Below are positions 34,319 through 60,276 of a stretch of DNA of 64,000 nucleotides, one piece after another. The position numbers were made by a program, and so were the translations under genes. Origin of the DNA: Blastocladiella emersonii ATCC 22665 (taxonomy: Eukaryota; Fungi; Blastocladiomycota); contig JANHCV010000002.1 in the NCBI GenBank assembly GCA_025594325.1, forward strand, positions 2,604,001 through 2,668,000, read 5' to 3'. Numbering within the stretch: the stretch's first letter is position 1; the number at the start of each line of letters is the position of its first letter. Under the pieces are notes generated by a model, which saw only the letters and a list, made by a program, of their open reading frames with translations, did no database searches and was not told the DNA's origin.

Positions 34319-35237
34319 CCGCGGGCGGGGCGCGGGTGGGGGTGGGCCGTTCGGGGGACGAGATTTGCTTGTAATGAACCTTCGTGTATTTACGAGATGG
34401 ATCGACTCAGTTTGTGTCCCGCTAGCCTCACTGCGACCCCATCGACCTCGCGTGGTTCAGCGGGTACGCGCAGGGGTACGCGGCAGCAGCGAGGCGAGGC
34501 AGAGACGCGTCGATCAATCATGTGAGGGTGGCGCCGGTCGCCAACGCGACTTCGCCGACCTTGTGGCGCCACCCTTTCCCTTGCGACCGCCGACGACCGT
34601 CCTCATCGTCAATGTCGGGCGACCATGAGCTGCTCTACTCCTATCGCAACGCAACCACGAACCGACCACCTGAAGCTCGGTTGCGGTTCCCGCCGCGCTG
34701 CGCCACCACACCGGCACGGTCACGGCGATCGATGGTCGAGGTTCGGCGGCGCGGTCCGACCGGGTTCCGCCGTCTCCCACCTCGGGATCCCACGCCGTGA
34801 CCGCGAGCGCGCGCGGTGGGTGCGCCCATCGGCCCTCCCGGCGGTCCCTCGCCGCCGCGACTTTCTCGGGTGGACCGGTCCTCTCTCTCCACCGCCCGAG
34901 ATCTCTCGTACGACGTCCTCTTGACGGCGAGACACACGCATCCTGCACCCGCACTCGACTCCGACCTGCTGCTGTACGGGCCCGTCCGCAGCCGCGATCC
35001 CGCCTGAGAACACATCGCTGACCCGCCGTCGTTGCCCGCGACTTGTAGGCGCGCACACATGTGTGATCGGGCTTCGACAACGGCACCCGGACTCGTTCCC
35101 GACCTTCTACGGTACGAACACTTGCGCTCTCGGGCCGCCGCGATGGATCGCTGACCCATCACCCGCGACATCACAGGCGCGCACGCGTCCAGGCCATCGA
35201 CCAACCCTTCTCGCAGTCGCAGATCCCGCACACCACC

Positions 35238-38121
35238 ATGGACCGCCCGCTCATGCAGTCGCCGCCGCGGCGTCCCAACAAGCGCGCCAAGCGCGGCAAG
35301 GGCGGCAAGGTGGCCGCGTCGTCCGACCCGTGGCAGGCGCTGACCAACTCGGACTCGGCCGAGCTCATCACCGGCCTGCCCGACCTGTCCTCCACCCACC
35401 CTCCCGCCCCCACTCCGCCCGCGCCGCAGCCGCAGCCGCAGTCGCAGCCAGTCCGGCCGTCCCCGTCGTGGTCAGCCAACGTGCCGATCGAGGCCCTCTT
35501 GATCCTGATCGCCCTGTCGGCCAACGTCCTCGGCGCCGACCTGTCCACTGCCTCTTCGCTCCCCGTCTCGACGCCGCCGCTCGCGTCCCTCGCGTCCTCC
35601 GCCCCACCTCGGACCGCCGCGAGTGTCCGCACCGCCGCCGCGAGCGTGCGGGCGTACCTGCGCGGCATGCACGCCGAGACCCACGCCGCCAACACGCCTT
35701 CGGCCGTGCGCCAGGCCGAGAACCTGCGCTTCGCCACGCTGGCAGCCCAGTGGGCCGCGGTGGTGTTTCGCTCGCCCGGTTTCGCGGGCACCACTGCGGC
35801 TGCGGCCGCCGGCGAGGAGGGCGCCGTGGAGGCGGACGCGGACGAGGCGCGCGGCGTGCCCCGTGGCGTCCATATTGCGCACACGGCACTTCGTCATCGT
35901 GTGGGTGACGGCGACCAAGCTCACCACGCCGGGTCGGTTTCGGTTCCGAACGCGCACACGGACCTGCTCGAGGCTGTCGCTGTCGCTCCCGCTGCCGAGA
36001 CCACGGGCGACGTCGATGTCGACGTCGACGAGGACCTCGGTCCGCAGCTCGTCGCCGTCGCGCTGGTCACGCACATCCAGCTCGCGATTCTCGCGACCAC
36101 GGGCGGGTTCGCGATCCAGGCCGCAACGGCGACTGGCCAGACCATGCCCAAGGTCGGGACGCTCACGGCGCACGAGGCCATCCTGGCCGAGCTCCTCGCC
36201 GTGTCCGATGGCGCCGCGTCGTGGCTGCTGTCGACCGACGTCGCGGTTCCGGGCTCCGATTGGCGCGACCTGGTCAGGTTCAGCGGCAGCGACCTCGGCA
36301 ACCGCATCTCGGCCCTCATCGGCAACGGCGACACGGAGCACCCCGGGTTCCACTTCCTCACGGGCCTCGCTGGTCTGTGGTGGAACGTGCCGGCGCTCAG
36401 CCAGCTCATCGAGCCGCACCCAGGTGACGACGAGCCGTCGCGCGCCCGCCGCGAGCAGTGCCGCAGGGCTGACGCCCGCGGACTCGTCCAGGGCACGCTG
36501 TTGCGCGAGCCCGTGTTCCAGCAGCTCATCGCCGACATCACGGCCGCGGCATCGGAATCCAGCTCGGCGTCGCTCAAGCTGGCCATGCCCAACGTCGGCA
36601 TGAGCACCTTCGCCAAGGCCCTGGACATCATTGGTCGGTACGGCTGGGCCACCGCGAGCCCCAACCAGCGCCACCGTCTCGACTTCGCCATCGCCCACCA
36701 TGCGCCGTTCGCCCTCCTCCTGTCGAGCGGGCACGTCCGCACGCGCGACGTCGTGTTCGGGCCCCGCTCGTGGGCCGTGCTCATCACGCACCACCTCGTC
36801 CGGGGTACGCTGTCGAGGATCCAGAAGGCGCTCAAGAAGATCCCGCTCGAGGAGTACCCGGTGTCGTCGGCATGGCCAGTGGATGCCAAGGTGATTGGCA
36901 ACGGTTCGTGCTGCTCGCCCTCCACTCACGCCCACCTCCGTGCGGAAAATACTGACTGACCGCTCGTCGCTGCATGTAGTGATTTTCCTGGCCGCGCTCG
37001 TGTCCGCGGGTGCGCCGCAGGACCTGCGCGTCGTGGTCCAGTTCGCGCGCAAGGTGGTCCCGGACAACGAGCACTTCCTCGGGTCGGTCGTCGTCGACGC
37101 GTGCGGCTTCGCGGGTTCGGAGCAGGAGCTCGTCCAGCAACTGGAGCGCCAGGCGGCGCTGCCGCAGCAACAGCAGCCCGCGCGCGGCGGCCATGGACCT
37201 GTCGTCGGCTCGCTCGCGTACCTCCTCGCGGCGGTGGCGAGGGGCCTCGTGGCACCGTGGGACGAGATCGCGGTTACGCTGCGCCTGCTCGCCAAGCTGC
37301 CGGCGGCCGCAGCTGCGGTCCGCGACCGCCTCGTGTCCACGCTGGGCGACCCGGCCGTCGCGATCCAGACGATTGCTGCGCTCGGAACAGCGCCGCCGGG
37401 TATCCGGTCGCGTCTTCTCGACCTGATCACGGCGAGTGGGAGTGCCGGCGTGCTGATATCGGGCACGCTCGAGGCCGTGTGTGCTGCCGCAGGCGGCGTC
37501 GGTGGCGGGTCCGAGGACGGCGACGATCGCGAACGCGTGTACCGACACGTCCTGCTGGCGCTGCCGCGGTTCGAGGCCAGACACAAGACGCTGCCGAACG
37601 GCGGCTGCTGCCGCGAGCCGGCATGCCCGGTCCAGGAGCAGCGCGTGTGCCGTCACGCGCTCGAGATCCTGCTGTCGGCGTTCCGCGAGACTGTCGCGTC
37701 GCCGCAGTTCTGGACGGCGGGCGCGGCCGAGGCCGTCAAGCAGTACTTCCTCGTGCTCGACCGGAACCACCAGCAGCAGTTCCTGTCGGCGGACGCGGTC
37801 GCGGCGGCGGTCGGTCGCGCGGCGGCCACGTACCACGACCACGACGGTTACGACGTGCGCAACGAGTACGGCCACGCGCCGCGTGTCGTCGACGTGGCCG
37901 CCGAAGGCGAGTCCAAAGACGGCGGCGCGGGCGTCGTCGGGCCGGCCGCTCCGGCGTGCTGGTGTGACGGCTCGGTGCGGCTCACGGTGGCGGCCAAGCT
38001 GTGCGCCGTTGCGCCCGACGCGGTCCGGTCGCTGTTCGCGGGCGAGCCTGTTCCGCAGGTCGTGGCCGTGCTCGTGGCCGAGGTCGACCGGCAGCAGCAG
38101 CAGCACCTGCACGCTTCCTAA
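35238..38121 (+). CDS. Unknown-family paralogue A (left arm), ~935 aa
   Basis: Exon 35238-36903, intron 36904-36979 (GTTCGT..ACTGAC..TAG), exon 36980-38121 in frame. Shares motif blocks with B and C. Confidence 0.7.
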
Positions 38122-38995
38122 GCCTCGATTCTCTCGTCCCTCCCTCGCACGCGCATCAGGCAGTCTCGTCGCTGCCGCTCATTTCCAATACACAACACGT
38201 TGTTGATCACCTGCCTCGGTCACCGGCCTGCCTGCGCTTCTCCTCGCCGCCGACAAGGAAGTGGAGACGCGACGATCAATCACGTGAGGGCGGCCCCGTT
38301 CGCCACCGAGGTCGCCGACCTTCGCGAACGCCGCCCCTTCGAGTTGCCCCCGCTCCGCGTGCCGACCTCTCCGACACAGAGCGACCATGAGCTGCTCGAC
38401 GCCGACCGCAATCGCACCCTCACCTGCAGCACCGCGCCCGCCCAGCACGCCCGGCCCGCGGTCTCGCTCGGCCTGATCCCGCTCGGCCTGATCCCGCTCG
38501 ACCGTGGCGCAGCGATGCGGCCCCGCAATCCCCCGTCTCCCACCTCGACACCCCACGCCGCGGCCGTGACCGCCGTGACCGTGGGAGTGCTCGGCGCGTG
38601 ACGGCGGATGCGCCCATTGGGCCTCCTCGGCCGCCGCGCTCCCCCGGACTCGGCCACATCCCTCCCTTCCTCCCTCGCCCCCATCTCTCTGCACCCACTC
38701 AAGCACATTGCTCCACGCGAGCACCTACGACTCTTGCATCTTTGCGAACGCACGACGGTACGGGCCCGTCCGCGGTCGCGCGCCCCGCCCACAGAGCATC
38801 GCTGACCCTCTGCCGTCGCCCGCGACGTGACAGGCGCACCCCCGTCGGTTCTCGGGCCTCTACGACTGCGCCCGCACCCGCTCCTGGCCCACTTCGGTAC
38901 GATCTCTCGCGGTCGTGCGCTGGCGCGACGGATCACTGACCCATCACCCGCGACATCACAGGTGCTCCCGCACGCCGACCCTCGCGCCAACGACC

Positions 38996-41900
38996 ATGTC
39001 CCGCCCGCTCATGCGCGCGCAGTCGCGCGGCGCAGCGAAACGCGCGGCCAGCGCGCAGTTTGCGGCCAAGGGCGGCAAGAAGAAGGCCAAGACCACCGAC
39101 TGGAAGACGCGCGACTCGTGGGACTTTGCTGCCCAGTACGTCGAGCTCGAGGACTCGCCCGACCTGCTCCCCGCCCCTGCCCCTCCCCCCTCTCCACCTG
39201 CGCCGTCGTCGTCAACTCGGCTCGCAGCGGCACCCCGTCCGCCAGCCGGTCCGCCGCCGCCGCCGCCGCCATCGGCCCCGACGTGGTCGCCCGACGTGCC
39301 GATCGAGGCCCTCGCGTTCCTCGTCGGGCAGTCGGTCGAGACGCTCAACGCCGACATCCACGCCGCACCACCATCGTCGCTCCTCGACTCGACGCCGCTC
39401 GCGTCGCTCGCGTCGCTCGTCCCTTCCACCGCACCCCGCACCGCCGCCAACGTCCGCACCGCCGCCGAGCACGTTCGCGCCTTCCTGCGCGACATGCGCC
39501 TCGCGGTCCACGCCGCCGCCAAGGCGCCCTCGACGGCTCACCAGGCCGAGTTCCTGCGCTTTGCTACGCTGGCCGCCAGGTGGGGCGCGGCGGTGGCCCG
39601 CTCGCCCGGGTTCGCGGACGTGGTGGGTCGTACCGTGTACATTGTCGGGGCGGCGGCGCCCGCCAGCGACGAGAACGCCGAGAGCGCCGAGAACGTCGGC
39701 GTCGGGCACGTTGAGCACGTCGACCATGTCGAGCACGTCGAGCACGTCGGCGTCGATCACGCGGAAAACGTCGAGAACGTCGAGGTCGACGAGGGCGGCA
39801 GCAACGTGCTGGTCCCCAAGCTCGCCAAGCTGTACCTCGGCGACGACGGCGTGCTGCTGCCCGCGCTCGAGGCCATGCTGATCGACAACGATGACGACGC
39901 GGATACCCATCCCTCCCCTGTCGTCGTCGGCGACGAGGGCGGCGTGGGTGGCGTGGACGGCGTCGGCGTGGACGGCGTCGGCGTGGACGGCGTCGGCGTA
40001 GACGGCGACAAGAACGAGAAGGAGAACGAGAAGGAGAACGAGAACGAGAACCGCGTCGAGGACAGCCCCACGACGGCCTCCGCGGGTGCGGCGCTGTGCG
40101 TGCCTCGCGGCGTCGTCCTCGCCCGCTCTGCGCTTCATTGTCGCGCGCGTGCGGACGGCGACCATGGTCATCATCACCACGCCGCCGACGCCGGGTTGGG
40201 CCCCGACACGGCTGCGGTCCCGCCCGCCCCGGTCCTTTCCGGCTCCACGGGCGACGCTCTCGTAGACCCGCCCGCCGCTTTCGACCCTGCAGCGGCAACC
40301 GCATCCCCGGCCGCTGGCGACGCCGGTGCCGGCGCAGACGCAGGCGACGAGGACCTCGGTCCGCAGCTCGTCTCCGCCGCGCTCGTCACGCTCATCCAGG
40401 TCGCGATCCTCGCGGCGACGGGCGGCATCGCGATCCAGGTCGAGACGGCGACCGGCCAGACCGTGTCCAAGGCCGCGACGGTTGCGGCGCACCGCGCCAT
40501 CTTCGAGGTGATCCTCGGCGTGGCCGACGACGTCGTGACGTGGCTGCTGTCGACCGACGTGGCCCTGCCGTGCTCGGACTGGATCGACCTCGTCCGCTTT
40601 GGCAACGGCGCCGTCGGCAACCGCCTCGCGGCCCTCGTCGCGAACGGCGACCCCGACCTGCCCGGCTACCACTACCTCGCGATTCTCGCGGCCATGTTCT
40701 GGGACGCCGAGGTGTTCGGCCAGCTCGTCCAACCGTACCCCGGCAACGACGAGCCGTCGCGCGCTCGCCGCGAGCGGTGCCGCCGCGCCGACGCGGACGG
40801 GCTGGTCCAGGGCTCGCTGTCGCGCAAGCCCGTCATCGAGGAGCTGATCGCCGACCTGACCTTCTGGGCGTCGGCGACGTCAACGTCCACGTTCAAGAAG
40901 GTGATGCCCAAGATCGAGGTCGTCGGCAAGGTGCTGGGCCTCGTCGCTCGCCACGGCCTGCGGATCGCCGACGCGGGCCAGCGCACCCGGCTCGACGCTG
41001 CCCTCGCGGGCCACATGCACCTCATCAACCACCTCGCAAACCTGCACCGCGTCTCGCGTACCGTGCTGTTTGGGCCGCGGTCGCTCGCGGCGCTCTTCCA
41101 GCGGCACCGCGAGCGGGACACCCTGTCCCGGATCTCGATGGTGCAGGAGTTTACGCCCCAAGCAGCAGACAGCGGCGGCGGCGGGTGAGGCGCTCGGCAA
41201 CGGTTCGTTTTCTCTCTCCCGTAACGCGCGTCCGCGTACGTGGCACTGACTGACTGACTGACGCCGATCCCCATCGCGTAGTGCTCACACGGAGCATGCT
41301 GGTGTACGAGGACGCGCCTCGGGGTCTCCACGGTATGGTCCAGTTCGCCCGCAAGGTCTTCCCGAAGAGCAAAAAGCGGTTCCTCGAGCAAGTCGTCAAC
41401 TCGTGCAGCGCCGGCAGCATCACCGGCTTCAAGGCTGAGGTCGCCCTGTGCCTGGAGCGGCAGGCCCTGCTCTCGCAGCAGCAGCAGCAGCAGCAGCAGC
41501 AGCACGCTCGGTGCAACGGGCCGGCCGCGGGCTCTTTCGCGCACGTCCTCGCGTGGATACCTCGGGGCCCCGTGCCGCCGTGGGACCTGTTCGCCATCGA
41601 GCTGCGCCTGCTCGCGACGCTGCCGGACGACATGGCCGCGGTCCGCGACCACCTCGTGTCGGTGCTGGCCAACCCGGCCGTCGCGATCCTGACGATTGCC
41701 GCGATCGGGACGGCGCCGCCGCAGATCCGGGTGTACCTGCTCGGCCTGATCCGGGCGAGTGGGACGGCGGGCGCGCTGATCTCGGGCGTGCTCGAGGCCG
41801 TGTTCGCCACCCACGGGCCCAACAACGAGTACTGCCACGTCCTGCCGGCGCTCCCGCCGTTTAAGAGCAGGCACAAGACGCTGCCGAACGGCGGGTGCTC

Positions 41901-42711
41901 GCGGCAGCTGCGGCAGTGCCCGGTCCAGCAGCAGCGCGTGTGCCGACACGCGCTCGAGGTTTTGCTGTGGGAGTTCCTCGCGACAGTGGTGTCGCCGCAG
42001 TCGTGGACGGCGGGCGCCGCCGGGGCCGTCAAGCAGTACTTCCTCGTGCTCGACCGGAACCACCAGCAGCAGTTCCTGTCGGCGGACGCGGTCGCGGCGG
42101 CGGTCGCTCGTGCGGCGGCAACGTACCAGGCCCACGACGGGTACGAGCCGCGCTACGAGTACGGTCGCGCGCCGCCGCACGGCGTCAACGTCATCGTCAA
42201 CGCGGGCGTCGGCCCCTCCAAGGGCGGCGACGACGAGGCGTGCGACGTGGACGACGTCGAGGTCAAGCGCGCGCCCGAGGAGGACGGCCACGCGGCGTGC
42301 GACGACGACATGGTTGTTGACACGGTCGTCGCCGTTGTCGAGGGCGAGTCCAAGGACGACTGCGCGCCGCGCGACGCGGATGGCGTCGACGTCAAGCGCG
42401 AGCCCGAGGACGACCACGCGCCGCGCGAGCCCGAGGACGACCACGCGCCGTGCAACGTGGGCAACGTCGAGATCAAGCGCGAGCCCGAGGAGGAGTCCGA
42501 GGCCGGCGGCGCGGGCAACGGCGGGTCGGCCGGGCCGGCGTGCTGGTGTGACGATTCGCCACGGCTGACGCTGGCGGCCAAGCTGTGCGCCGTGGCGCCC
42601 GACGCGGTCCGGTCGCTGTTCGCGGGCGAGCCCGGCGGCGTGCCGCAGGTCGTGGCCGTGTTCATGGCCGAGATCGACCGGTTCCGTCCGCCTCCCCATG
42701 CGACTACGTGA
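38996..42711 (+). CDS. Unknown-family paralogue B (left arm), with a frame problem at its intron
   Basis: ORFs 38996-41188 and 41281-42711 are homologous to A exons 1 and 2. The A-equivalent donor (41203) is out of frame and preceded by TGA 41186-41188. Confidence 0.6.
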
Positions 42712-42712
42712 G

Positions 42713-43407
42713 CCGCTCGCCGCTCGCCGCTCGCCGCTCGCCGCTCGCCGCCCTCGTCGTTTGTCGTTTGTCCCCTCTTGCACATTTTCCCTCTCCCGTT
42801 ACCTTTCCTATGCAATACACGCACCCCCTCTCGCCATCGCACTCTCGCCTGCCCCTCTCGCCTTCGCGCGGGCCGACCGGGATTCGGGGTCGGCGGGTGA
42901 TAGCGATAAACGCGTCTCGCGGTCCGGGCGTGACCGGCACGCCATTTCGCGGCGCGTCTCGCGGGCCGCCGTGGTCGCTCGCCCCGCGCCCCGCCCGCTG
43001 CTCATAGCGAACCCCTCAACGGCAAGGAGAAGAAGGTCGCCGACTGCGACTGCTGCTGTGTGGCGCAGGACGCAGGACGCAGGACGCATCGGCCATCTGC
43101 ACATGCGCGGGGCGTGAGTGGCGGCGCCGCGGCAGGATCTCCTCTCTTTGCTTGAGGAAAGCAGCCGGCTGGGCCCTTCTCTCCCGTGGCCGCCGAGTGT
43201 CTCCCGCGGTTCCCACGCTGCGCGGTTGGGGCGCCGGCGTCAGCATCTTCCGCGCTGGACGGGGTCGCCGCCGCCGCCGCGCCCGCGCCCTCGCCCTCGC
43301 CCTCGCTCTCCCCTCTCCCTCTCGGCCTTGCGCTGCGCCGAGCGCCCCGCACTCTCTCCCTGAACCCGCCGACCAAACGCAACGCAACGCAACGCAACGC
43401 AACGCAA
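42713..43407. repeat. Microsatellites between B and C: (GCCGCTC)n ~42713-42750, (GCAGGAC)n ~43066-43086, (AACGC)n ~43376-43407; mirrored in the right arm
   Basis: Directly visible short tandem repeats. Confidence 0.85.
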
Positions 43408-43428
43408 CACACTACCACGACCGCAACC

Positions 43429-46400
43429 ATGTCGCTGCCCGGCCGCGCCCCGTCCGTGCCACCGCCGCCGCCGCCCCTGCTGCCGCCACCCCTGTCTCGA
43501 TCCGCTTCCGACTCCGCCGCCGAATCCTCGAGCAGGGAGAGGCGCAAGCGCCGGCGTGACCGTGCGCGCGAGCGCGAGGGGGACGTCGGCACCTCGTCGA
43601 AGCGCCCCAAGCACGGCCAGGACCCGCACCTCGCCGACTCGGTCACCAACATGATCTCGTCGCTGCACGTTGCCGCCCCGTCCGCTGCACGCGCCGATCT
43701 GCCCGCCGAGCCTGCCACCGTCGCTGGGGTCGCCGCGGCCGCGTGCGCCGCCCTTCTCCCCGTTCCGCCACCCGCCGACCTCCCCGCCGACCCCCGCCAG
43801 CTGCTGTGGGACAGCTTCCACAACGGCGCGCGTGCCGCCCGCGTCTCCATGGCCGTGCGAAACCTGCGGGTCGCCCTGCCCGCCGCCGAGGCCGCCGAGG
43901 CCGCGCAGGACGCCGCCGTCCGCAGCGCCTCGGCCCAGCTCCCAAAGCAGCTGCCCGCCATCCGCGCGACGGCGCAGTGGGCCATCCAGTCGATCCGGTC
44001 GGCCAGCCTCGCGGCCGCCGGCGCCGACGACCTACTCGCCGACCTGCCCGACAGCTCCCTATTCGAGCTCAACGCGGGCGACCCGAGCGGCACCACGGCG
44101 GCGGCGGCCGCGGCGGCGGCGGCTCCAGCACCTCCAGCCGCACCTCCAATGGGACCGGCAGCACCGGCGGCACTGGCCGCACATCACCCGCGCGCCGGGC
44201 TCGTCCATCTCGGCCTCGCGCGCGCTCGCGGGCTCGCACCCGCGTCAACTACTACTACTACTACTACCACACCCACCGCACCCGGGGACCCGGTTGCCGC
44301 CCCGACCACTGCCGCGACGTCGCCCGCGCCCGCGCAGGTGGACGACCCCGCCGACGCCGACCTCGCCGACACGGACCTCCCGACGGCCCTCGTCACGGCC
44401 CTGCAGCTCCTCTGCCTCACCATCGCGCACCCGTCTGCCGTTCCCGAGGCCGTGCACCCGGACACGCACTCGCACCGCGCCGAGACCGCCGGCGTGACCG
44501 CCAGGGCCGCCGCCGCCGAGTACGCCGCCCTGCTCGAGGGCGTGATTGACGCGGTCGACGGCGCGGCGCCGTGGCTGCTGACCGCCGTCCCGCTCTCGTG
44601 GGAGACGTGGCTCGGCCTCGTCGGCCTCCTCGACCACCCGGTCGCCCTGATCCAGTGGGGCGTCGAGCCGCACGGCTTGGTCGGCGTCGACTTCTTCGCC
44701 CTCCTCGCCCTCTGCGGCAGCAACGCGCCCGCCCTCCGGCGCCTCGTCGGATTGCGCACCGTCACCCGCGACGGCCGCAGCCACGGCGACGCGCTCGTCC
44801 AGGGCGTCCTCTCGTCCGGGCCCGTCTTTGACCAGGTCCTCGCCACCATGGAGGCGTGGCCGGCGGCGTGGTCCGTGGCCGAGCCCGAGCCCGTGCCTGA
44901 TTCCGGCTCTGCCGCCGGCGCGGCGACCGCTGAGCCGCCGCTGCCGCTGCGGCCGTCACCGCGGCTTCCACCCGTGCCCGCTGCCGTCGGCGACACCCTC
45001 GCGGCCGTTGTGGGCCACGGCTGGGCGCGGGTCCAACCCGGGCAGCACGAGCGCCTGGATGCGGCGCTGTCGGGCAACTGGCGCGTCGGCCTGCACCTTC
45101 TCGACACGCTCGAGGAGCCGAAACTCAACCGCATCCTCGGCCCGCACTCGTGGGCGCGAATCGTGGCCGAGCTGGCCGCGCTCGGCACGCAGGAGGCCCT
45201 CGGCAAGGCGCAGCGGTTCGTCAAGACCCGCCACGTCACACCGCACGTCTCCCGGCGAGACACGTTCGGCGAAGGTATGCTCACTCTGCCGCTGCGTGCG
45301 CGCACCCGTGGCTCAGCAGTACCGTACTGACCTCTCGCCCCGATGCTACCCCCGTTATCCTTCCCTCCCTGCGCTAGCCATGGCCATCTCCGCGGTGCTG
45401 GGCCCCGATGCTCCGCGTCATCTGCACGCGACCATCTGGCTCGTGCGCAAGCTCGTGCCTGGGAACAAGGAGTTCATGGACGGCGTGCTCCCAGCGTGCA
45501 GCATCGACGCGCTCGTCGGGTTCCGCGCGAAGCTGCTGCTCTACATCGAGTCGCAGCAGCAGCAGGCCGGGCAAGTTTGCCCGCTCGTCGCCTTCCTCGC
45601 CAACATGCAGCCGACCGAGGGCCCGGCCGCAGCGCCGTGTGACGTGCTCGCGGTGCTCGTCGCACTGGCCAGTAGCGCTCGGCGAGTCGCCGACGGTACA
45701 CTCGGCCACTACGCCGAGCCCGAACGCCTCGTCGCGTCCGACTTCCACGCCCACCTCGCCTCGGCGCTGAGCGACCCGACAGCCGCGCGCTTCATTGCCG
45801 CCGCCGTCCGCGCGGCGCCCGCAGACTACCTGCCGGTGCTCGCCAAGCAGATTGTCGCAGCGGGCATGGCTGGGCCCCTCCTGTCGGCCGTCCTTGAGGC
45901 CCACTTTTCCGGTCTCGACCTCGCGCCGCTCGACCCCGAGGTGTACAAGGGCGGCTGTCTCCAGCACCACTCGCTCCTGCAGCAGCCGGCGTGGCGCGAC
46001 CTGCTCGAGATCCTGCTGTTCGCGTGTGGCGTGTGCGACGTGACGGCGTCCCCGGTGTCCGTACCTCTGTCGCTCCCCATCACGACCCGCGCCAACGCCG
46101 CCGTGACGCGGTACTTCGAGGAGCTACACGAGCATCACTCGCAGGCGCTGCTGCCGCCCGGCGCGATCGCGGCGGCGGTGGCCAAAGCGGCGGTTGGGTG
46201 CATGGACCACAACGACCACGGCCACGACCTCGCGCAAGGCGGCGGCGGCGGCGGGTACTGGATCGGCCACGGGTACACTTGCCCGCTCGCAGCGTCCGAG
46301 TGCCGGTGCGACGGGGGCGACGCGCAGCTCACATTCGCCGCCCGGCTGTGCGCCGTGGTACCGCACGCTGTCGACGCCCTGTTCGCGGGCGGTCCCGACG

Positions 46401-46519
46401 GCCTTCCACCCGTAGTGCAAGCACTCCGCGCGCCTGTGCCCACCGCTGGTCCCGGCCCCGCCCCCGCTGCCACCGAGCACACCAAGTGCAACTGCCCCGT
46501 CCTCAGCTTCCTCGAATAG
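43429..46519 (+). CDS. Unknown-family paralogue C (left, full length), ~995 aa
   Basis: Exon 43429-45274, intron 45275-45377 (GTATGC..TAG, phase 1 like A), exon 45378-46519. Ends with the family motif LTFAARLCAVVPHAVDALFAG. Confidence 0.7.
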
Positions 46520-47488
46520 GGTGTCGCTGTCACTGCTGCCGCCCCGCGCCCGTGTCCGACTCGGCGCTCGTGCTCGCCCCGTCCACTCTCGCTCAAGATC
46601 CCGTCCCTCAGCTTCGTGGTGCACTGTAAACCCATTGCTCTCCTCCGTCTCGTCCTCCTCCCGTCTGTTATCTACATTCTTGCAACCATTCTCCCTCTCG
46701 CATCACACAAAGCCATCTGACGTGACCCACCAAGCCCTCCTTTGCTTCGCTCGATACAACTACCACCTGCATAGCTTTTGATTTTGCCCCCTCTCTTGCT
46801 TGCCACCTCCCTTTTTTGCTCGTTGAGCTCTTTTTTGAGCACCATTTGTTCGCGCACACGACGTGCTGCGAACGTGGGAGAATGGGAGAAACAGCCGTGA
46901 GAGGGTGGGAGACGAGAGACGCGTCGCACAATCGTGTGACGGGTCACCTGCTGCTCGCCTCCGCCGCCGCCACACTTCACCGCAAGGGGCGGGGCGAAAT
47001 TCGCCTCGCCCTTGGCCTCGCCCGGGCTCCCTCACCCGGAATGAATAGCAGCGTCCAAATGTCATCTCATGGAATGCGACTGCCCGCAACGCGACCCGCA
47101 TGGCAAATACGTCGCCCTCGCCCATGGCCAGCGAGCACCCTCGCGACTCGGTGTTTGGTGTTTTTGCTGCTTTACTTTTTTGGCCCAGTGCTGACTGAGC
47201 AAGGAATGAGAGCAACGATGATGGATGATGATGCCTTGTCGACGCCGTCGGCCTTGCCCTCTTGTCGTCGGCCGGCCCGTTGAGTTGAGCGAGCGCACGC
47301 GGCTGAGATCTCAAACAAAGATTGAATTGAAGCCGCCGCTCGCTCGCCCGCCCGCCTGCCTGCCCGCCCGCCCGCCCGCTCTGCTCCAGAACCGCCGTGA
47401 CACTGCTGTCCGTTTCTCACGCTCGATCCTTATGCTGCTGCGGGCCTCGATTGCTCTCACTCTCACGCTCAATTCTCATGTGCGCCTT
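46013..47488. other. Unique 1,476-bp spacer of the palindrome
   Basis: Arm complementarity breaks at 46013/47488. Contains the last 507 nt of left gene C plus non-coding sequence. Confidence 0.92.
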
Positions 47489-50072: not shown

Positions 50073-50789
50073 GGTTGCGGTCGTGGTAGTGTGTTGCGTT
50101 GCGTTGCGTTGCGTTGCGTTGCGTTTGGTCGGCGGGTTCAGGGAGAGAGTGCGGGGCGCTCGGCGCAGCGCAAGGCCGAGAGGGAGAGGGGAGAGCGAGG
50201 GCGAGGGCGAGGGCGCGGGCGCGGCGGCGGCGGCGACCCCGTCCAGCGCGGAAGATGCTGACGCCGGCGCCCCAACCGCGCAGCGTGGGAACCGCGGGAG
50301 ACACTCGGCGGCCACGGGAGAGAAGGGCCCAGCCGGCTGCTTTCCTCAAGCAAAGAGAGGAGATCCTGCCGCGGCGCCGCCACTCACGCCCCGCGCATGT
50401 GCAGATGGCCGATGCGTCCTGCGTCCTGCGTCCTGCGCCACACAGCAGCAGTCGCAGTCGGCGACCTTCTTCTCCTTGCCGTTGAGGGGTTCGCTATGAG
50501 CAGCGGGCGGGGCGCGGGGCGAGCGACCACGGCGGCCCGCGAGACGCGCCGCGAAATGGCGTGCCGGTCACGCCCGGACCGCGAGACGCGTTTATCGCTA
50601 TCACCCGCCGACCCCGAATCCCGGTCGGCCCGCGCGAAGGCGAGAGGGGCAGGCGAGAGTGCGATGGCGAGAGGGGGTGCGTGTATTGCATAGGAAAGGT
50701 AACGGGAGAGGGAAAATGTGCAAGAGGGGACAAACGACAAACGACGAGGGCGGCGAGCGGCGAGCGGCGAGCGGCGAGCGGCGAGCGGC

Positions 50790-53700
50790 TCACGTAGTCG
50801 CATGGGGAGGCGGACGGAACCGGTCGATCTCGGCCATGAACACGGCCACGACCTGCGGCACGCCGCCGGGCTCGCCCGCGAACAGCGACCGGACCGCGTC
50901 GGGCGCCACGGCGCACAGCTTGGCCGCCAGCGTCAGCCGTGGCGAATCGTCACACCAGCACGCCGGCCCGGCCGACCCGCCGTTGCCCGCGCCGCCGGCC
51001 TCGGACTCCTCCTCGGGCTCGCGCTTGATCTCGACGTTGCCCACGTTGCACGGCGCGTGGTCGTCCTCGGGCTCGCGCGGCGCGTGGTCGTCCTCGGGCT
51101 CGCGCTTGACGTCGACGCCATCCGCGTCGCGCGGCGCGCAGTCGTCCTTGGACTCGCCCTCGACAACGGCGACGACCGTGTCAACAACCATGTCGTCGTC
51201 GCACGCCGCGTGGCCGTCCTCCTCGGGCGCGCGCTTGACCTCGACGTCGTCCACGTCGCACGCCTCGTCGTCGCCGCCCTTGGAGGGGCCGACGCCCGCG
51301 TTGACGATGACGTTGACGCCGTGCGGCGGCGCGCGACCGTACTCGTAGCGCGGCTCGTACCCGTCGTGGGCCTGGTACGTTGCCGCCGCACGAGCGACCG
51401 CCGCCGCGACCGCGTCCGCCGACAGGAACTGCTGCTGGTGGTTCCGGTCGAGCACGAGGAAGTACTGCTTGACGGCCCCGGCGGCGCCCGCCGTCCACGA
51501 CTGCGGCGACACCACTGTCGCGAGGAACTCCCACAGCAAAACCTCGAGCGCGTGTCGGCACACGCGCTGCTGCTGGACCGGGCACTGCCGCAGCTGCCGC
51601 GAGCACCCGCCGTTCGGCAGCGTCTTGTGCCTGCTCTTAAACGGCGGGAGCGCCGGCAGGACGTGGCAGTACTCGTTGTTGGGCCCGTGGGTGGCGAACA
51701 CGGCCTCGAGCACGCCCGAGATCAGCGCGCCCGCCGTCCCACTCGCCCGGATCAGGCCGAGCAGGTACACCCGGATCTGCGGCGGCGCCGTCCCGATCGC
51801 GGCAATCGTCAGGATCGCGACGGCCGGGTTGGCCAGCACCGACACGAGGTGGTCGCGGACCGCGGCCATGTCGTCCGGCAGCGTCGCGAGCAGGCGCAGC
51901 TCGATGGCGAACAGGTCCCACGGCGGCACGGGGCCCCGAGGTATCCACGCGAGGACGTGCGCGAAAGAGCCCGCGGCCGGCCCGTTGCACCGAGCGTGCT
52001 GCTGCTGCTGCTGCTGCTGCTGCTGCGAGAGCAGGGCCTGCCGCTCCAGGCACAGGGCGACCTCAGCCTTGAAGCCGGTGATGCTGCCGGCGCTGCACGA
52101 GTTGACGACTTGCTCGAGGAACCGCTTTTTGCTCTTCGGGAAGACCTTGCGGGCGAACTGGACCATACCGTGGAGACCCCGAGGCGCGTCCTCGTACACC
52201 AGCATGCTCCGTGTGAGCACTACGCGATGGGGATCGGCGTCAGTCAGTCAGTCAGTGCCACGTACGCGGACGCGCGTTACGGGAGAGAGAAAACGAACCG
52301 TTGCCGAGCGCCTCACCCGCCGCCGCCGCTGTCTGCTGCTTGGGGCGTAAACTCCTGCACCATCGAGATCCGGGACAGGGTGTCCCGCTCGCGGTGCCGC
52401 TGGAAGAGCGCCGCGAGCGACCGCGGCCCAAACAGCACGGTACGCGAGACGCGGTGCAGGTTTGCGAGGTGGTTGATGAGGTGCATGTGGCCCGCGAGGG
52501 CAGCGTCGAGCCGGGTGCGCTGGCCCGCGTCGGCGATCCGCAGGCCGTGGCGAGCGACGAGGCCCAGCACCTTGCCGACGACCTCGATCTTGGGCATCAC
52601 CTTCTTGAACGTGGACGTTGACGTCGCCGACGCCCAGAAGGTCAGGTCGGCGATCAGCTCCTCGATGACGGGCTTGCGCGACAGCGAGCCCTGGACCAGC
52701 CCGTCCGCGTCGGCGCGGCGGCACCGCTCGCGGCGAGCGCGCGACGGCTCGTCGTTGCCGGGGTACGGTTGGACGAGCTGGCCGAACACCTCGGCGTCCC
52801 AGAACATGGCCGCGAGAATCGCGAGGTAGTGGTAGCCGGGCAGGTCGGGGTCGCCGTTCGCGACGAGGGCCGCGAGGCGGTTGCCGACGGCGCCGTTGCC
52901 AAAGCGGACGAGGTCGATCCAGTCCGAGCACGGCAGGGCCACGTCGGTCGACAGCAGCCACGTCACGACGTCGTCGGCCACGCCGAGGATCACCTCGAAG
53001 ATGGCGCGGTGCGCCGCAACCGTCGCGGCCTTGGACACGGTCTGGCCGGTCGCCGTCTCGACCTGGATCGCGATGCCGCCCGTCGCCGCGAGGATCGCGA
53101 CCTGGATGAGCGTGACGAGCGCGGCGGAGACGAGCTGCGGACCGAGGTCCTCGTCGCCTGCGTCTGCGCCGGCACCGGCGTCGCCAGCGGCCGGGGATGC
53201 GGTTGCCGCTGCAGGGTCGAAAGCGGCGGGCGGGTCTACGAGAGCGTCGCCCGTGGAGCCGGAAAGGACCGGGGCGGGCGGGACCGCAGCCGTGTCGGGG
53301 CCCAACCCGGCGTCGGCGGCGTGGTGATGATGACCATGGTCGCCGTCCGCACGCGCGCGACAATGAAGCGCAGAGCGGGCGAGGACGACGCCGCGAGGCA
53401 CGCACAGCGCCGCACCCGCGGAGGCCGTCGTGGGGCTGTCCTCGACGCGGTTCTCGTTCTCGTTCTCCTTCTCGTTCTCCTTCTCGTTCTTGTCGCCGTC
53501 TACGCCGACGCCGTCCACGCCGACGCCGTCCACGCCGACGCCGTCCACGCCACCCACGCCGCCCTCGTCGCCGACGACGACAGGGGAGGGATGGGTATCC
53601 GCGTCGTCATCGTTGTCGATCAGCATGGCCTCGAGCGCGGGCAGCAGCACGCCGTCGTCGCCGAGGTACAGCTTGGCGAGCTTGGGGACCAGCACGTTGC

Positions 53701-54505
53701 TGCCGCCCTCGTCGACCTCGACGTTCTCGACGTTTTCCGCGTGATCGACGCCGACGTGCTCGACGTGCTCGACATGGTCGACGTGCTCAACGTGCCCGAC
53801 GCCGACGTTCTCGGCGCTCTCGGCGTTCTCGTCGCTGGCGGGCGCCGCCGCCCCGACAATGTACACGGTACGACCCACCACGTCCGCGAACCCGGGCGAG
53901 CGGGCCACCGCCGCGCCCCACCTGGCGGCCAGCGTAGCAAAGCGCAGGAACTCGGCCTGGTGAGCCGTCGAGGGCGCCTTGGCGGCGGCGTGGACCGCGA
54001 GGCGCATGTCGCGCAGGAAGGCGCGAACGTGCTCGGCGGCGGTGCGGACGTTGGCGGCGGTGCGGGGTGCGGTGGAAGGGACGAGCGACGCGAGCGACGC
54101 GAGCGGCGTCGAGTCGAGGAGCGACGATGGTGGTGCGGCGTGGATGTCGGCGTTGAGCGTCTCGACCGACTGCCCGACGAGGAACGCGAGGGCCTCGATC
54201 GGCACGTCGGGCGACCACGTCGGGGCCGATGGCGGCGGCGGCGGCGGCGGACCGGCTGGCGGACGGGGTGCCGCTGCGAGCCGAGTTGACGACGACGGCG
54301 CAGGTGGAGAGGGGGGAGGGGCAGGGGCGGGGAGCAGGTCGGGCGAGTCCTCGAGCTCGACGTACTGGGCAGCAAAGTCCCACGAGTCGCGCGTCTTCCA
54401 GTCGGTGGTCTTGGCCTTCTTCTTGCCGCCCTTGGCCGCAAACTGCGCGCTGGCCGCGCGTTTCGCTGCGCCGCGCGACTGCGCGCGCATGAGCGGGCGG
54501 GACAT
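50790..54505 (-). CDS. Paralogue B' (mirror copy of B)
   Basis: Translations identical to 38996-42711, including the same junction defect. Confidence 0.6.
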
Positions 54506-55379
54506 GGTCGTTGGCGCGAGGGTCGGCGTGCGGGAGCACCTGTGATGTCGCGGGTGATGGGTCAGTGATCCGTCGCGCCAGCGCACGACCGCGAGAGATC
54601 GTACCGAAGTGGGCCAGGAGCGGGTGCGGGCGCAGTCGTAGAGGCCCGAGAACCGACGGGGGTGCGCCTGTCACGTCGCGGGCGACGGCAGAGGGTCAGC
54701 GATGCTCTGTGGGCGGGGCGCGCGACCGCGGACGGGCCCGTACCGTCGTGCGTTCGCAAAGATGCAAGAGTCGTAGGTGCTCGCGTGGAGCAATGTGCTT
54801 GAGTGGGTGCAGAGAGATGGGGGCGAGGGAGGAAGGGAGGGATGTGGCCGAGTCCGGGGGAGCGCGGCGGCCGAGGAGGCCCAATGGGCGCATCCGCCGT
54901 CACGCGCCGAGCACTCCCACGGTCACGGCGGTCACGGCCGCGGCGTGGGGTGTCGAGGTGGGAGACGGGGGATTGCGGGGCCGCATCGCTGCGCCACGGT
55001 CGAGCGGGATCAGGCCGAGCGGGATCAGGCCGAGCGAGACCGCGGGCCGGGCGTGCTGGGCGGGCGCGGTGCTGCAGGTGAGGGTGCGATTGCGGTCGGC
55101 GTCGAGCAGCTCATGGTCGCTCTGTGTCGGAGAGGTCGGCACGCGGAGCGGGGGCAACTCGAAGGGGCGGCGTTCGCGAAGGTCGGCGACCTCGGTGGCG
55201 AACGGGGCCGCCCTCACGTGATTGATCGTCGCGTCTCCACTTCCTTGTCGGCGGCGAGGAGAAGCGCAGGCAGGCCGGTGACCGAGGCAGGTGATCAACA
55301 ACGTGTTGTGTATTGGAAATGAGCGGCAGCGACGAGACTGCCTGATGCGCGTGCGAGGGAGGGACGAGAGAATCGAGGC

Positions 55380-58263
55380 TTAGGAAGCGTGCAGGTGCTG
55401 CTGCTGCTGCCGGTCGACCTCGGCCACGAGCACGGCCACGACCTGCGGAACAGGCTCGCCCGCGAACAGCGACCGGACCGCGTCGGGCGCAACGGCGCAC
55501 AGCTTGGCCGCCACCGTGAGCCGCACCGAGCCGTCACACCAGCACGCCGGAGCGGCCGGCCCGACGACGCCCGCGCCGCCGTCTTTGGACTCGCCTTCGG
55601 CGGCCACGTCGACGACACGCGGCGCGTGGCCGTACTCGTTGCGCACGTCGTAACCGTCGTGGTCGTGGTACGTGGCCGCCGCGCGACCGACCGCCGCCGC
55701 GACCGCGTCCGCCGACAGGAACTGCTGCTGGTGGTTCCGGTCGAGCACGAGGAAGTACTGCTTGACGGCCTCGGCCGCGCCCGCCGTCCAGAACTGCGGC
55801 GACGCGACAGTCTCGCGGAACGCCGACAGCAGGATCTCGAGCGCGTGACGGCACACGCGCTGCTCCTGGACCGGGCATGCCGGCTCGCGGCAGCAGCCGC
55901 CGTTCGGCAGCGTCTTGTGTCTGGCCTCGAACCGCGGCAGCGCCAGCAGGACGTGTCGGTACACGCGTTCGCGATCGTCGCCGTCCTCGGACCCGCCACC
56001 GACGCCGCCTGCGGCAGCACACACGGCCTCGAGCGTGCCCGATATCAGCACGCCGGCACTCCCACTCGCCGTGATCAGGTCGAGAAGACGCGACCGGATA
56101 CCCGGCGGCGCTGTTCCGAGCGCAGCAATCGTCTGGATCGCGACGGCCGGGTCGCCCAGCGTGGACACGAGGCGGTCGCGGACCGCAGCTGCGGCCGCCG
56201 GCAGCTTGGCGAGCAGGCGCAGCGTAACCGCGATCTCGTCCCACGGTGCCACGAGGCCCCTCGCCACCGCCGCGAGGAGGTACGCGAGCGAGCCGACGAC
56301 AGGTCCATGGCCGCCGCGCGCGGGCTGCTGTTGCTGCGGCAGCGCCGCCTGGCGCTCCAGTTGCTGGACGAGCTCCTGCTCCGAACCCGCGAAGCCGCAC
56401 GCGTCGACGACGACCGACCCGAGGAAGTGCTCGTTGTCCGGGACCACCTTGCGCGCGAACTGGACCACGACGCGCAGGTCCTGCGGCGCACCCGCGGACA
56501 CGAGCGCGGCCAGGAAAATCACTACATGCAGCGACGAGCGGTCAGTCAGTATTTTCCGCACGGAGGTGGGCGTGAGTGGAGGGCGAGCAGCACGAACCGT
56601 TGCCAATCACCTTGGCATCCACTGGCCATGCCGACGACACCGGGTACTCCTCGAGCGGGATCTTCTTGAGCGCCTTCTGGATCCTCGACAGCGTACCCCG
56701 GACGAGGTGGTGCGTGATGAGCACGGCCCACGAGCGGGGCCCGAACACGACGTCGCGCGTGCGGACGTGCCCGCTCGACAGGAGGAGGGCGAACGGCGCA
56801 TGGTGGGCGATGGCGAAGTCGAGACGGTGGCGCTGGTTGGGGCTCGCGGTGGCCCAGCCGTACCGACCAATGATGTCCAGGGCCTTGGCGAAGGTGCTCA
56901 TGCCGACGTTGGGCATGGCCAGCTTGAGCGACGCCGAGCTGGATTCCGATGCCGCGGCCGTGATGTCGGCGATGAGCTGCTGGAACACGGGCTCGCGCAA
57001 CAGCGTGCCCTGGACGAGTCCGCGGGCGTCAGCCCTGCGGCACTGCTCGCGGCGGGCGCGCGACGGCTCGTCGTCACCTGGGTGCGGCTCGATGAGCTGG
57101 CTGAGCGCCGGCACGTTCCACCACAGACCAGCGAGGCCCGTGAGGAAGTGGAACCCGGGGTGCTCCGTGTCGCCGTTGCCGATGAGGGCCGAGATGCGGT
57201 TGCCGAGGTCGCTGCCGCTGAACCTGACCAGGTCGCGCCAATCGGAGCCCGGAACCGCGACGTCGGTCGACAGCAGCCACGACGCGGCGCCATCGGACAC
57301 GGCGAGGAGCTCGGCCAGGATGGCCTCGTGCGCCGTGAGCGTCCCGACCTTGGGCATGGTCTGGCCAGTCGCCGTTGCGGCCTGGATCGCGAACCCGCCC
57401 GTGGTCGCGAGAATCGCGAGCTGGATGTGCGTGACCAGCGCGACGGCGACGAGCTGCGGACCGAGGTCCTCGTCGACGTCGACATCGACGTCGCCCGTGG
57501 TCTCGGCAGCGGGAGCGACAGCGACAGCCTCGAGCAGGTCCGTGTGCGCGTTCGGAACCGAAACCGACCCGGCGTGGTGAGCTTGGTCGCCGTCACCCAC
57601 ACGATGACGAAGTGCCGTGTGCGCAATATGGACGCCACGGGGCACGCCGCGCGCCTCGTCCGCGTCCGCCTCCACGGCGCCCTCCTCGCCGGCGGCCGCA
57701 GCCGCAGTGGTGCCCGCGAAACCGGGCGAGCGAAACACCACCGCGGCCCACTGGGCTGCCAGCGTGGCGAAGCGCAGGTTCTCGGCCTGGCGCACGGCCG
57801 AAGGCGTGTTGGCGGCGTGGGTCTCGGCGTGCATGCCGCGCAGGTACGCCCGCACGCTCGCGGCGGCGGTGCGGACACTCGCGGCGGTCCGAGGTGGGGC
57901 GGAGGACGCGAGGGACGCGAGCGGCGGCGTCGAGACGGGGAGCGAAGAGGCAGTGGACAGGTCGGCGCCGAGGACGTTGGCCGACAGGGCGATCAGGATC
58001 AAGAGGGCCTCGATCGGCACGTTGGCTGACCACGACGGGGACGGCCGGACTGGCTGCGACTGCGGCTGCGGCTGCGGCGCGGGCGGAGTGGGGGCGGGAG
58101 GGTGGGTGGAGGACAGGTCGGGCAGGCCGGTGATGAGCTCGGCCGAGTCCGAGTTGGTCAGCGCCTGCCACGGGTCGGACGACGCGGCCACCTTGCCGCC
58201 CTTGCCGCGCTTGGCGCGCTTGTTGGGACGCCGCGGCGGCGACTGCATGAGCGGGCGGTCCAT
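55380..58263 (-). CDS. Paralogue A' (mirror copy of A)
   Basis: Translations identical to 35238-38121. Confidence 0.7.
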
Positions 58264-59215
58264 GGTGGTGTGCGGGATCTGCGACTGCGAGAAGGGTTGG
58301 TCGATGGCCTGGACGCGTGCGCGCCTGTGATGTCGCGGGTGATGGGTCAGCGATCCATCGCGGCGGCCCGAGAGCGCAAGTGTTCGTACCGTAGAAGGTC
58401 GGGAACGAGTCCGGGTGCCGTTGTCGAAGCCCGATCACACATGTGTGCGCGCCTACAAGTCGCGGGCAACGACGGCGGGTCAGCGATGTGTTCTCAGGCG
58501 GGATCGCGGCTGCGGACGGGCCCGTACAGCAGCAGGTCGGAGTCGAGTGCGGGTGCAGGATGCGTGTGTCTCGCCGTCAAGAGGACGTCGTACGAGAGAT
58601 CTCGGGCGGTGGAGAGAGAGGACCGGTCCACCCGAGAAAGTCGCGGCGGCGAGGGACCGCCGGGAGGGCCGATGGGCGCACCCACCGCGCGCGCTCGCGG
58701 TCACGGCGTGGGATCCCGAGGTGGGAGACGGCGGAACCCGGTCGGACCGCGCCGCCGAACCTCGACCATCGATCGCCGTGACCGTGCCGGTGTGGTGGCG
58801 CAGCGCGGCGGGAACCGCAACCGAGCTTCAGGTGGTCGGTTCGTGGTTGCGTTGTGATAGGCGTTGGGTAGCTTATGGCTGCTCCCGGTCGATGTGGTCG
58901 GGACGAAGCGGAGCGGCGGTGGCCTCGAGCTCGAGTGAAGGAGTGGCGCTCGCAGAAGGGTCGCGTCGGCGAGCAGCGCCACCCTCACACGTTTGAACAA
59001 CGCGTCCTGACCGTCGACAAATTCCGCCCGCCGCCGGCTGGATCGCTGTCTTTTTCCTAGACACGAGCCTAGTCGTCCTTCCCTCGACCCAAGCCTCGCC
59101 GCTGCAACCTAGAGCTTGACGCCGATGTGCTCTCACTGACACCAGAGAAGCGCGATGGCAGGGGAGCAAACAGCTAGTCTATCGATCGATCCGACACCCG
59201 CTAGACTCACGCGCG

Positions 59216-60017: not shown

Positions 60018-60276
60018 GACGCGACGCGATCCTCGCCGTGCCCGTTCAGAACGCGCTCAACTACGCCACGGTAGATACAAGAAGTGCTTCGGGCTCGAGA
60101 TGCATGGCAGGGAGTCGTGAGGAGAGCGAGCGTGACCCCAACGGGTCCGCGAAGAAGGCCCCAAAGCCGCGGCGAGTGGCATCACCGCGGTACGGAACGC
60201 GGCCGGCAGCGGGTCGGAGCAGCCCGACTTGGTCGCCTCGCCTCCCCTCCTCCTCTCTCTCTCTCTCCCGCGTGCA

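Follow-up and report, generated by a model that had tools for sequence, protein, structure and literature searches.

The window analysed here, 64,000 nucleotides of contig JANHCV010000002.1 of Blastocladiella emersonii ATCC 22665, contains as assembled a palindrome at approximately 2,638,647–2,662,854 of that record (record position equals window position plus 2,604,000; window positions are used below). Its left arm (34647–46012, plus strand) carries genes A and B and most of C, its right arm (47489–58854, minus strand) carries a truncated C', B' and A', and the two are separated by a single-copy spacer of 1,476 nt (46013–47488). The structure is interstitial, lying inside a contig of 2.84 Mb at a distance of 179 kb from the contig end. 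The left flank is occupied by the gene for the mRNA-export factor GLE1 (32623–34374, plus strand; PF07817, E 1.5e-37), and the right flank by an inverted relic fragment of a paralogue (59465–59945, minus strand), which is 38–54 % identical to residues 264–430 of A over three frames, followed by a short-chain dehydrogenase ORF (60084–61160, plus strand; PF00106, E 6e-19).

The genes carried by each arm, A, B and C, are old paralogues in tandem and belong to an orphan family that is predicted to be all-helical. Gene A (35238–38118, plus strand) encodes approximately 934 aa and has an intron at 36904–36979; it is annotated as the C-terminal part of H9P43_002790, in which GLE1 has been wrongly fused to it. 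Gene B (H9P43_002791; 38996–42708, plus strand) is 1163 aa as annotated, and its frame is interrupted by a TGA at 41183–41185, directly ahead of the conserved intron donor. Gene C (H9P43_002792; 43429–46519, plus strand; 995 aa, intron 45275–45377) is full length and runs in frame across the junction of arm and spacer. Its counterpart C' (H9P43_002793; 47417–50072, minus strand; 850 aa) lacks approximately 170 C-terminal residues and ends instead in a 23-aa tail translated from the spacer. B' (50793–54505, minus strand) and A' (55383–58263, minus strand) mirror B and A and have been annotated as one fused gene, H9P43_002794, the second annotation error exposed by the structure. The locus thus holds two copies each of A and B, and one full and one truncated copy of C. 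Long ORFs, a GC3 of 0.86–0.93 with a GC2 of about 0.5, conserved introns and the annotated proteins, which are predictions, all mark the arm genes as coding.

The family is evolving fast (dN/dS approximately 0.7–0.8) and was absent from all other species among 1.84 billion representatives; homologue searches with exon 1 of C and with the D genes described below returned only proteins of B. emersonii itself. No Pfam domain was found in any of the scanned arm ORFs or in the ORF at the spacer edge (47225–48127), the other spacer ORFs (46124–47314) lying outside the scan. Atlas features matched HEAT/TPR/ARM clusters with scores of 0.87–0.91 at low recognition, an AF2 model built from a four-row alignment was all-helical at low confidence (mean pLDDT 53.6), and Foldseek matches to HEAT/ARM/TOG proteins were weak (E approximately 1e-2, TM <0.2).

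When compared base by base, 34647–46012 and 47489–58854 are exact reverse complements over 11,366 nt, with no difference and no indel. A repeat search gave slightly longer arms, 34623–46012 and 47489–58878 (11,390 nt, '100%', 1,476 nt apart), and the base-by-base comparison places all six mismatches of this longer pair in its outermost 24 nt (at 34627–34646). Tandem repeats and microsatellites occur throughout as mirrored pairs of equal length, and seven microsatellites of at least five units were counted in each arm, the count having been run on the arm sequence minus 42710–42753. That interval is itself a (GCCGCTC)n microsatellite, with its mirror copy at 50748–50791. The full arm alignment that the earlier note had called for therefore bears out its description of apparently identical 11.4-kb arms with a mirror sum of 93501 and no net indels, and its further claims of preserved microsatellite lengths, a 1,476-bp unique spacer and unique flanks hold equally.

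A perfect inverted repeat of 11 kb cannot have arisen by chance. The upper bound on divergence between the arms is about 2.6e-4 per site, in contrast to a dS of approximately 0.35–0.47 between the tandem paralogues A and B; the tandem array is hence old, whereas the arms are unchanged. GC3 in the arm genes is not raised above that of the flank genes (0.87–0.95), and this lack of an excess gives no sign of long GC-biased conversion, though as evidence it is weak.

The spacer comprises the 3' end of C (to 46519), intergenic DNA, and, as it appears, remains of a lost fourth gene, namely its upstream box and 5' region. The spacer neither resembles itself in inverted orientation nor matches the arms on the minus strand, and its right part is without arm homology on either strand. 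The two inner junctions differ in kind. At 46012|46013, C reads through in frame to the conserved C-terminal motif of the family (encoded at 46300–46420), while on the other side the mirror copy of C stops at 47489 and continues into the unrelated tail. No extended homology was found at 47488|47489, where a microhomology of a few nucleotides would be hidden inside the arms, the ancestral sequence being gone. Judged from this anatomy, the inner-left junction is the apparent ancestral one and the inner-right junction is apparently novel and non-homologous. Two junction-spanning ORFs were looked for in the recorded contigs and neither is on record. Because a crossover between perfect arms would flip the spacer, the orientation assembled, and with it the assignment of the complete C, may represent one of two isomers, and both should be read with that caution.

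An upstream box conserved in the family has five matches in the window against 0.04 expected, and recurs ahead of the D genes, which lie on another contig. One copy lies ahead of B (38266–38288, plus strand; mirror copy 55213–55235, minus strand). The copy ahead of A (34504–34526, plus strand) is not part of the arm, its distance from the boundary being 143 nt, and the promoter-proximal box of A' is the diverged copy in the right flank (58984–59006). A further copy in the spacer (46918–46940, plus strand) has no gene downstream, suggesting that a fourth tandem gene, here called X, was lost when it was cut off by the inner junction. The outer boundary of the palindrome, 143 nt downstream of the box, falls inside approximately 150 nt of family-level 5' homology, which is shared at about 80 % with the region upstream of B. 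On the left there is a degenerate edge (34623–34646, plus strand) in which 18 of 24 positions are identical to the mirror 58855–58878 and in which a small upstream ORF has its ATG (34626); the right flank has ATA instead. The right-flank 5' element as a whole (58855–59006, minus strand) is a diverged paralogue of the regions upstream of A and B. Past the arms, homology extends for only about 150 nt, with a 10-nt offset. The left flank of A aligns with the region upstream of B with a score of 82 and with the right flank with a score of 41, shuffled sequences reaching at most 20. The idea that the arms themselves continue outward as an older, diverged tier was considered and rejected, as the flank homology is at the level of paralogues, closer to the upstream region of B than to the mirror position.

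A second locus, on JANHCV010000004.1, carries a fourth subfamily, D, of the same orphan family. It has perfect inverted arms of 7,088 nt around a 4,108-nt spacer, plus tandem copies; its inverted pair is perfect, as against differences of 0.1 % within the tandem pair and 0.35 % for an outer tier. The two loci share perfect inverted arms carrying genes of one orphan family and differ in layout. The D genes are arranged head to head, facing outward, and a Helitron-like ORF lies over the inner edge; the genes of the present locus face towards the spacer. No transposon was found here, and apart from coding paralogy neither the spacer nor the right flank resembles the D region that bears the Helitron-like ORF.

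We consider that the palindrome is probably real and that it probably arose as an inverted duplication of the fold-back or template-switch type, resolved at its far end by homology, and is either very young or maintained by conversion; the order of events, the mechanism and the existence of the locus as assembled are deduced from sequence. The starting point would have been an old plus-strand tandem array, A, B, C and X, adjoining an older, decayed family member in inverse orientation, and the decayed inverted paralogue just past the right arm is taken to belong to such an older inverted array. In a single replicative event, a DNA end or nascent strand would have switched template, leaving a non-homologous junction of fold-back type at 47488|47489, inside the 5' region of X, with the 1,476-nt loop left as the spacer. 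C, B and A would then have been copied in inverted order over 11.4 kb until homologous recombination with the inverted family member, within its conserved 5' region (34646|34647 and 58854|58855), made the other junction, the intervening original sequence being replaced in the process. The data allow either arm, left or right, as the template. Identity to the letter would imply that the event, or the last re-copying from arm to arm, was very recent, or that conversion between the arms is ongoing. The proposal in the earlier note of a very recent inverted duplication or an actively homogenised structure fits all of these findings, and the anatomy of the junctions supports a real duplication, but its either/or stands, since youth and homogenisation are inseparable from one genome.

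The existence of the structure depends on the assembly, which was built with LJA from approximately 190x of adapter-filtered PacBio HiFi reads with a mean length of 10.5 kb (PMC9730499; the run named there is SRR19593111) and polished with Pilon. The text of that paper contains neither 'palindrom' nor 'inverted'. The four runs listed all derive from the sample that was assembled, and no RNA run is among them. An artefact in which only one arm is real, dispersed copies have been mis-joined through the spacer, or differing arms have been polished to identity could draw on arms (11.4 kb) that are about as long as the mean read and on an assembly that was purged and manually refined, and the word share of 0.99 in run X1 is no proof that the junction words occur. 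We nevertheless regard it as improbable. The structure calls for four different junctions, a pair on the outside leading into distinct unique flanks and a pair on the inside joining the opposite ends of a single spacer; once these are granted, no linear arrangement other than the palindrome fits, and only the spacer's orientation is free. Biological signatures are seen in the graded homology, at the level of paralogues, of the outer edge and in a truncated gene that has acquired a new tail, and the outer 5' element, judged by its sequence, points to a homology-mediated outer junction as well as away from an artefact. The earlier note had argued similarly from a diverged continuation beyond the arms; such a continuation exists, for about 150 nt, and does count against an artefact, but it is a family-level 5' element that is found also upstream of B and D and in the spacer. 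Polishing is a poor explanation because at the D locus the assembly retains 4 to 16 mismatches and 3 to 9 gaps between other near-identical copies, and where differences of 0.1–0.35 % are kept perfect identity is not the default. Palindromes produced from HiFi reads by a missing adapter lie at contig ends and lack a genomic spacer; that origin was rejected for a structure with a 1.5-kb genic spacer internal to its contig, and the opinion of the earlier note that a simple read fold-back is unlikely is upheld by these same features together with the unique flanks and the outer element. From structure alone, the locus could also be supposed to be a programmed flip-flop cassette that uses its arms as recombination sites, since a crossover between perfect arms would invert the spacer and transfer the 3' exon of C to the opposite arm, thereby settling which C is complete. 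This is very improbable, as neither the dedicated recombinase nor the short sites of a site-specific invertible switch are seen here: the scanned arm ORFs and the ORF at the spacer edge encode no recombinase, the arms are 11 kb of ordinary genes, and the two isomers do not differ in gene content (a full C plus a truncated C'), so that nothing obvious would be switched.

A different reading of the same data is that the palindrome is ancient and that its identity has been kept only by frequent conversion between the arms, the perfect tract being the latest conversion tract with no recent duplication. The older inverted family remnant past the right arm (box and relic), the location of the outer boundary within homology, and the D locus, where the inverted pair alone is perfect, are all consistent with this, and maintenance at >99.9 % identity is reported in the literature (PMC3723533, PMC8600007). 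However, a pure conversion tract should end in homology on both sides and at the inner end it does not; there the 3' end of C is joined directly to the 5' region of a different gene lying on the opposite strand, and no diverged C-like sequence follows. The outer flank, being no closer to its mirror than to the paralogue B, is not an eroded arm edge, and the arm genes have no excess of GC3. Hence, we think conversion rather unlikely as the sole explanation. The outer 5' element by itself is no demonstration of long-term conversion, though after a fold-back origin conversion can still maintain the identity of the arms.

The best-known large perfect palindromes are those of mammalian sex chromosomes and those formed during gene amplification in tumours and yeast. 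The present locus is a further case of a known type of structure, the large gene-bearing palindrome, in that it combines arms of many kb that are at least 99 % identical with a unique spacer, unique flanks and protein-coding arm genes. With the palindromes of mammalian sex chromosomes (human Y P1–P8, X-chromosome palindromes) it shares arms >10 kb, identity of at least 99.9 %, a unique spacer and multi-copy, lineage-restricted gene families in the arms; the identity of those palindromes is ascribed to arm-to-arm conversion (PMC3723533, PMC8600007, PMC8327919). It differs in being fungal and autosome-like, in the size of its arms (about 11 kb, against tens of kb up to Mb), and in that its formation junctions, one non-homologous and one homologous, are still legible; conversion here is putative. 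Fold-back inverted duplications, as found in human constitutional rearrangements, yeast and CHO amplification, share with it a single-copy spacer of kb size and a non-homologous junction between spacer and inverted copy, and its spacer lies inside their reported range of 766–70,466 bp (median 3.4 kb; PMC3907307). Classical cases are usually terminal, with terminal deletion, telomere healing or translocation following a dicentric intermediate. Neither an adjacent terminal deletion nor healing by telomere or translocation is seen at the present interstitial locus, where recombination within a 5' element of an inverted paralogue appears to have sealed the far end; its formation resembles a fold-back event but not the classical terminal type. 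Long, highly similar repeats have been tied to copy-number change and rearrangement in Candida albicans (PMC7371428), where they are described as substrates of new copy-number changes under drug selection, while here the palindrome is the product.

With one junction non-homologous and the other apparently mediated by homology, the locus is a clean natural case that constrains how interstitial palindromes form. To our knowledge, B. emersonii, a zoosporic, early-diverging fungus, has no known sexual cycle, and in it a fast-evolving orphan family has been amplified by palindromes at two loci. It is possible, if somewhat doubtful, that this reflects a genome-wide regime in which fold-back or template switching creates large inverted duplications and very efficient conversion between the arms keeps them identical to the letter. 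If so, gene blocks by the dozen would be kept in palindromes that correct themselves, an autosomal counterpart to those of the Y chromosome, and the present locus would be unusually informative among them, as both of its formation junctions can still be read and its orphan family is palindromic at two unlinked loci.

A repeat search of the window returned a single giant inverted pair (34623-46012 and 47489-58878, gap 1,476 nt), and a base-by-base comparison of the arms found six mismatches, every one inside 34627-34646. The perfect tract is therefore 34647-46012 (+) and 47489-58854 (-), complementary over 11,366 nt without an indel, and the mirror sum of 93501 proposed in the earlier note is exact over this length. 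The preserved microsatellite lengths and unique spacer it described were also recovered: all tandem repeats detected by TRF come as equal-length mirrored pairs, and the 1,476 nt between the arms (46013-47488) have no inverted self-similarity and do not match the arms on the minus strand. A script counted seven microsatellites of at least five units in each arm, where long homopolymers were absent. The smaller inverted pairs (77-89 %) are mirror images of direct repeats within each arm, and window GC is approximately 70 %. With record coordinates obtained from matching ORFs (window + 2,604,000), the palindrome lies at about 2,638,647-2,662,854 in contig JANHCV010000002.1 (2,841,633 bp), approximately 179 kb from the contig end. 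An uninterrupted 3,484 aa ORF (9533-19984) and a divergent 846 aa ORF (5687-8224) are found upstream of the palindrome region.

Each arm includes three paralogous genes, all oriented toward the spacer, which were modelled using frame-specific GC, tblastn among pieces, an intron search and the annotated proteins. In the left arm they are A (35238-38118, intron 36904-36979), B (38996-42708) and C (43429-46519, intron 45275-45377), with mirror copies A', B' and C' on the right; their GC3 is 0.86-0.93 and GC2 approximately 0.5. A defect in B noted earlier was confirmed: an in-frame TGA (41183-41185), also present in B', follows a (GGC)n run and directly precedes an intron donor conserved with A. 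The only donor/acceptor pair that restores the frame (41185/41294) is not conserved, so that B may be alternatively spliced or a pseudogene. The defect region spans 41150-41300 (mirror 52201-52351), and a (GCCGCTC)n microsatellite lies directly downstream of B at 42710-42753 (mirror about 50748-50791). In the public record, the GLE1 gene of the left flank (32623-34374) and A are merged as one 1,485 aa protein (H9P43_002790, 32623-38118) and B' and A' as one of 2,059 aa (H9P43_002794, 50793-58263); both fusions are probable annotation errors.

The paralogues share 41-68 % amino acid identity, with dS of 0.35-0.77 (0.35-0.47 for A and B), and are old. Divergence between the arms has an upper 95 % limit of about 3/11,366 or 2.6e-4, over a thousandfold lower than the A-B dS. 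A dN/dS of approximately 0.66-0.8, which the strong GC3 bias may inflate, indicates a fast-evolving family, under weak constraint or diversifying selection. No Pfam family matches the arm genes. When the conserved C-terminal domain was searched as a profile against 1.84 billion representative proteins, only four matched, all from B. emersonii: A, B, C' and D, the last being a fourth subfamily on contig JANHCV010000004.1. Atlas features, an all-helical AF2 model of low confidence (mean pLDDT 53.6) and weak Foldseek matches agree in pointing to a HEAT/ARM-like helical solenoid, too weakly for membership to be assigned. The N-termini carry a basic stretch resembling a nuclear localisation signal, and the proteins may be nuclear.

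A box of 23-25 nt with the core GAGACGCG.CG..CAA.C..GTG occurs five times in the window against 0.04 expected: ahead of A (34504-34526) and B (38266-38288), in the spacer (46918-46940), ahead of B' (55213-55235, -) and in the right flank (58984-59006, -). It also precedes the D genes on the other contig, by about 600 nt (9405-9440 and 915-950 (-) of stretch L002). Within the box is an ACGCGT (MluI-type) core, and the B copy also has a CACGTG E-box. The box sits about 600-730 nt before the ATG of A, B and the D genes and is probably a promoter element common to them. In A and B a 5' UTR comes next, containing a small upstream ORF and two conserved introns, as had been noticed previously.

The two inner boundaries differ. 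Since the left copy of C remains in frame through 46012|46013 and then encodes the family's most conserved C-terminal motif (approximately 46300-46420), the left inner junction is ancestral. The match of C' (H9P43_002793, 850 aa, recovered at 100 % in a protein search) ends at 47489 and is followed by 23 unrelated residues read from the opposite spacer end, bearing out the suggestion of one full and one truncated copy of C. On neither strand do the right two-thirds of the spacer resemble the arms, and 47488|47489 reads as a non-homologous junction. We infer that the spacer box is a 5' region left without its gene: a fourth tandem member, X, lost its body when the inverted copy became attached at 47488|47489.

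At the outer boundary, identity drops from 100 % to 18/24 across 34623-34646, and beyond 34623 homology of approximately 80 % continues, at a 10 nt offset, as far as the box, which sits 143 nt outside the boundary. The absence of indels claimed for this step thus holds for the first 24 nt only. The earlier note was right that homologous, diverged DNA continues beyond the arms, but an older outer tier of the same arms is rejected, as the left flank aligns better with the region upstream of B (score 82) than with the right flank (41); the right flank scores 26 against B, and shuffled controls 20 or less. The ATG of the small upstream ORF at 34626 is common to A and B and is ATA on the right. The relic paralogue reported previously, a frameshifted family fragment in inverted orientation (59465-59945), is found just past the right flank element, and the right side therefore already carried an old, inversely oriented member. 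As the perfect tract terminates within the 5' region of this inverted member, the outer junction is homology-mediated.

Most likely, this is a real palindrome of a known kind, either very young or actively homogenised, formed by fold-back or template-switch inverted duplication among tandem members of a gene family restricted to this species. Both options of the earlier note, recent duplication or active homogenisation, fit the 11,366 nt identity and the junctions, and one of the two most likely applies. A kb-sized single-copy loop at a non-homologous junction, combined with a second junction that is homologous, is consistent with a single replicative event: a 3' end at 47488, nascent or resected, would fold back, copy C-B-A in reverse to the 5' region of A and then be caught by the paralogous 5' element in inverted orientation. 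An equivalent route would be break-induced replication primed from the inverted 5' element and terminated at 47488 by end joining. In published fold-back duplications, spacers measure 766-70,466 bp and microhomology 2-8 bp (PMC3907307); the B. emersonii spacer is within range, and microhomology would hide in the innermost arm bases. The inner junction is not accounted for by pure gene conversion within an old palindrome, though conversion may well keep the arms identical after formation. GC3 in the arm genes does not exceed that of the flank genes and so gives, as weak evidence, no sign of long GC-biased conversion.

On indirect grounds, we consider it quite improbable that the palindrome is an assembly artefact. 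Four distinct junctions (two unique flanks and two spacer ends) allow only a palindrome as the linear solution, spacer orientation being the sole freedom left. Missing-adapter HiFi palindromes, to our knowledge, lack a genic spacer and are not internal to Mb-scale contigs, and this locus matches them in neither respect. A graded edge at paralogue level, a truncated gene that has gained a new tail and an orphaned box are not assembler products, and the same assembly retains small differences among other near-identical copies, at the D locus. ORFs spanning the junctions had no match on record in a contig look-up. The assembly used 605,547 PacBio HiFi reads (mean 10.5 kb, about 190x), adapter filtering followed by the La Jolla Assembler, purge_dups with manual removal of duplicated contigs, and Pilon polishing with 65 nt Illumina reads; "palindrom" and "inverted" are absent from the text of the genome paper (PMC9730499).

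The D locus, reconstructed over 43 kb from two stretches, L002 and L003 (JANHCV010000004.1, record 365,073-408,246), has perfect inverted arms of 7,088 nt around a 4,108 nt spacer, nested in a 9.2 kb inverted match of 99.65 % (16-17 mismatches, 9-11 gaps), together with a 6.3 kb tandem pair of 99.89 %. Its palindrome includes the D subfamily genes H9P43_003859, 003860 and 003864. An S8 peptidase gene lies on each outer side, and one arm has a Helitron_like_N ORF lying across its inner edge. The same orphan family is thus palindromic at two loci, and the value of the locus described here is that both formation junctions are legible.
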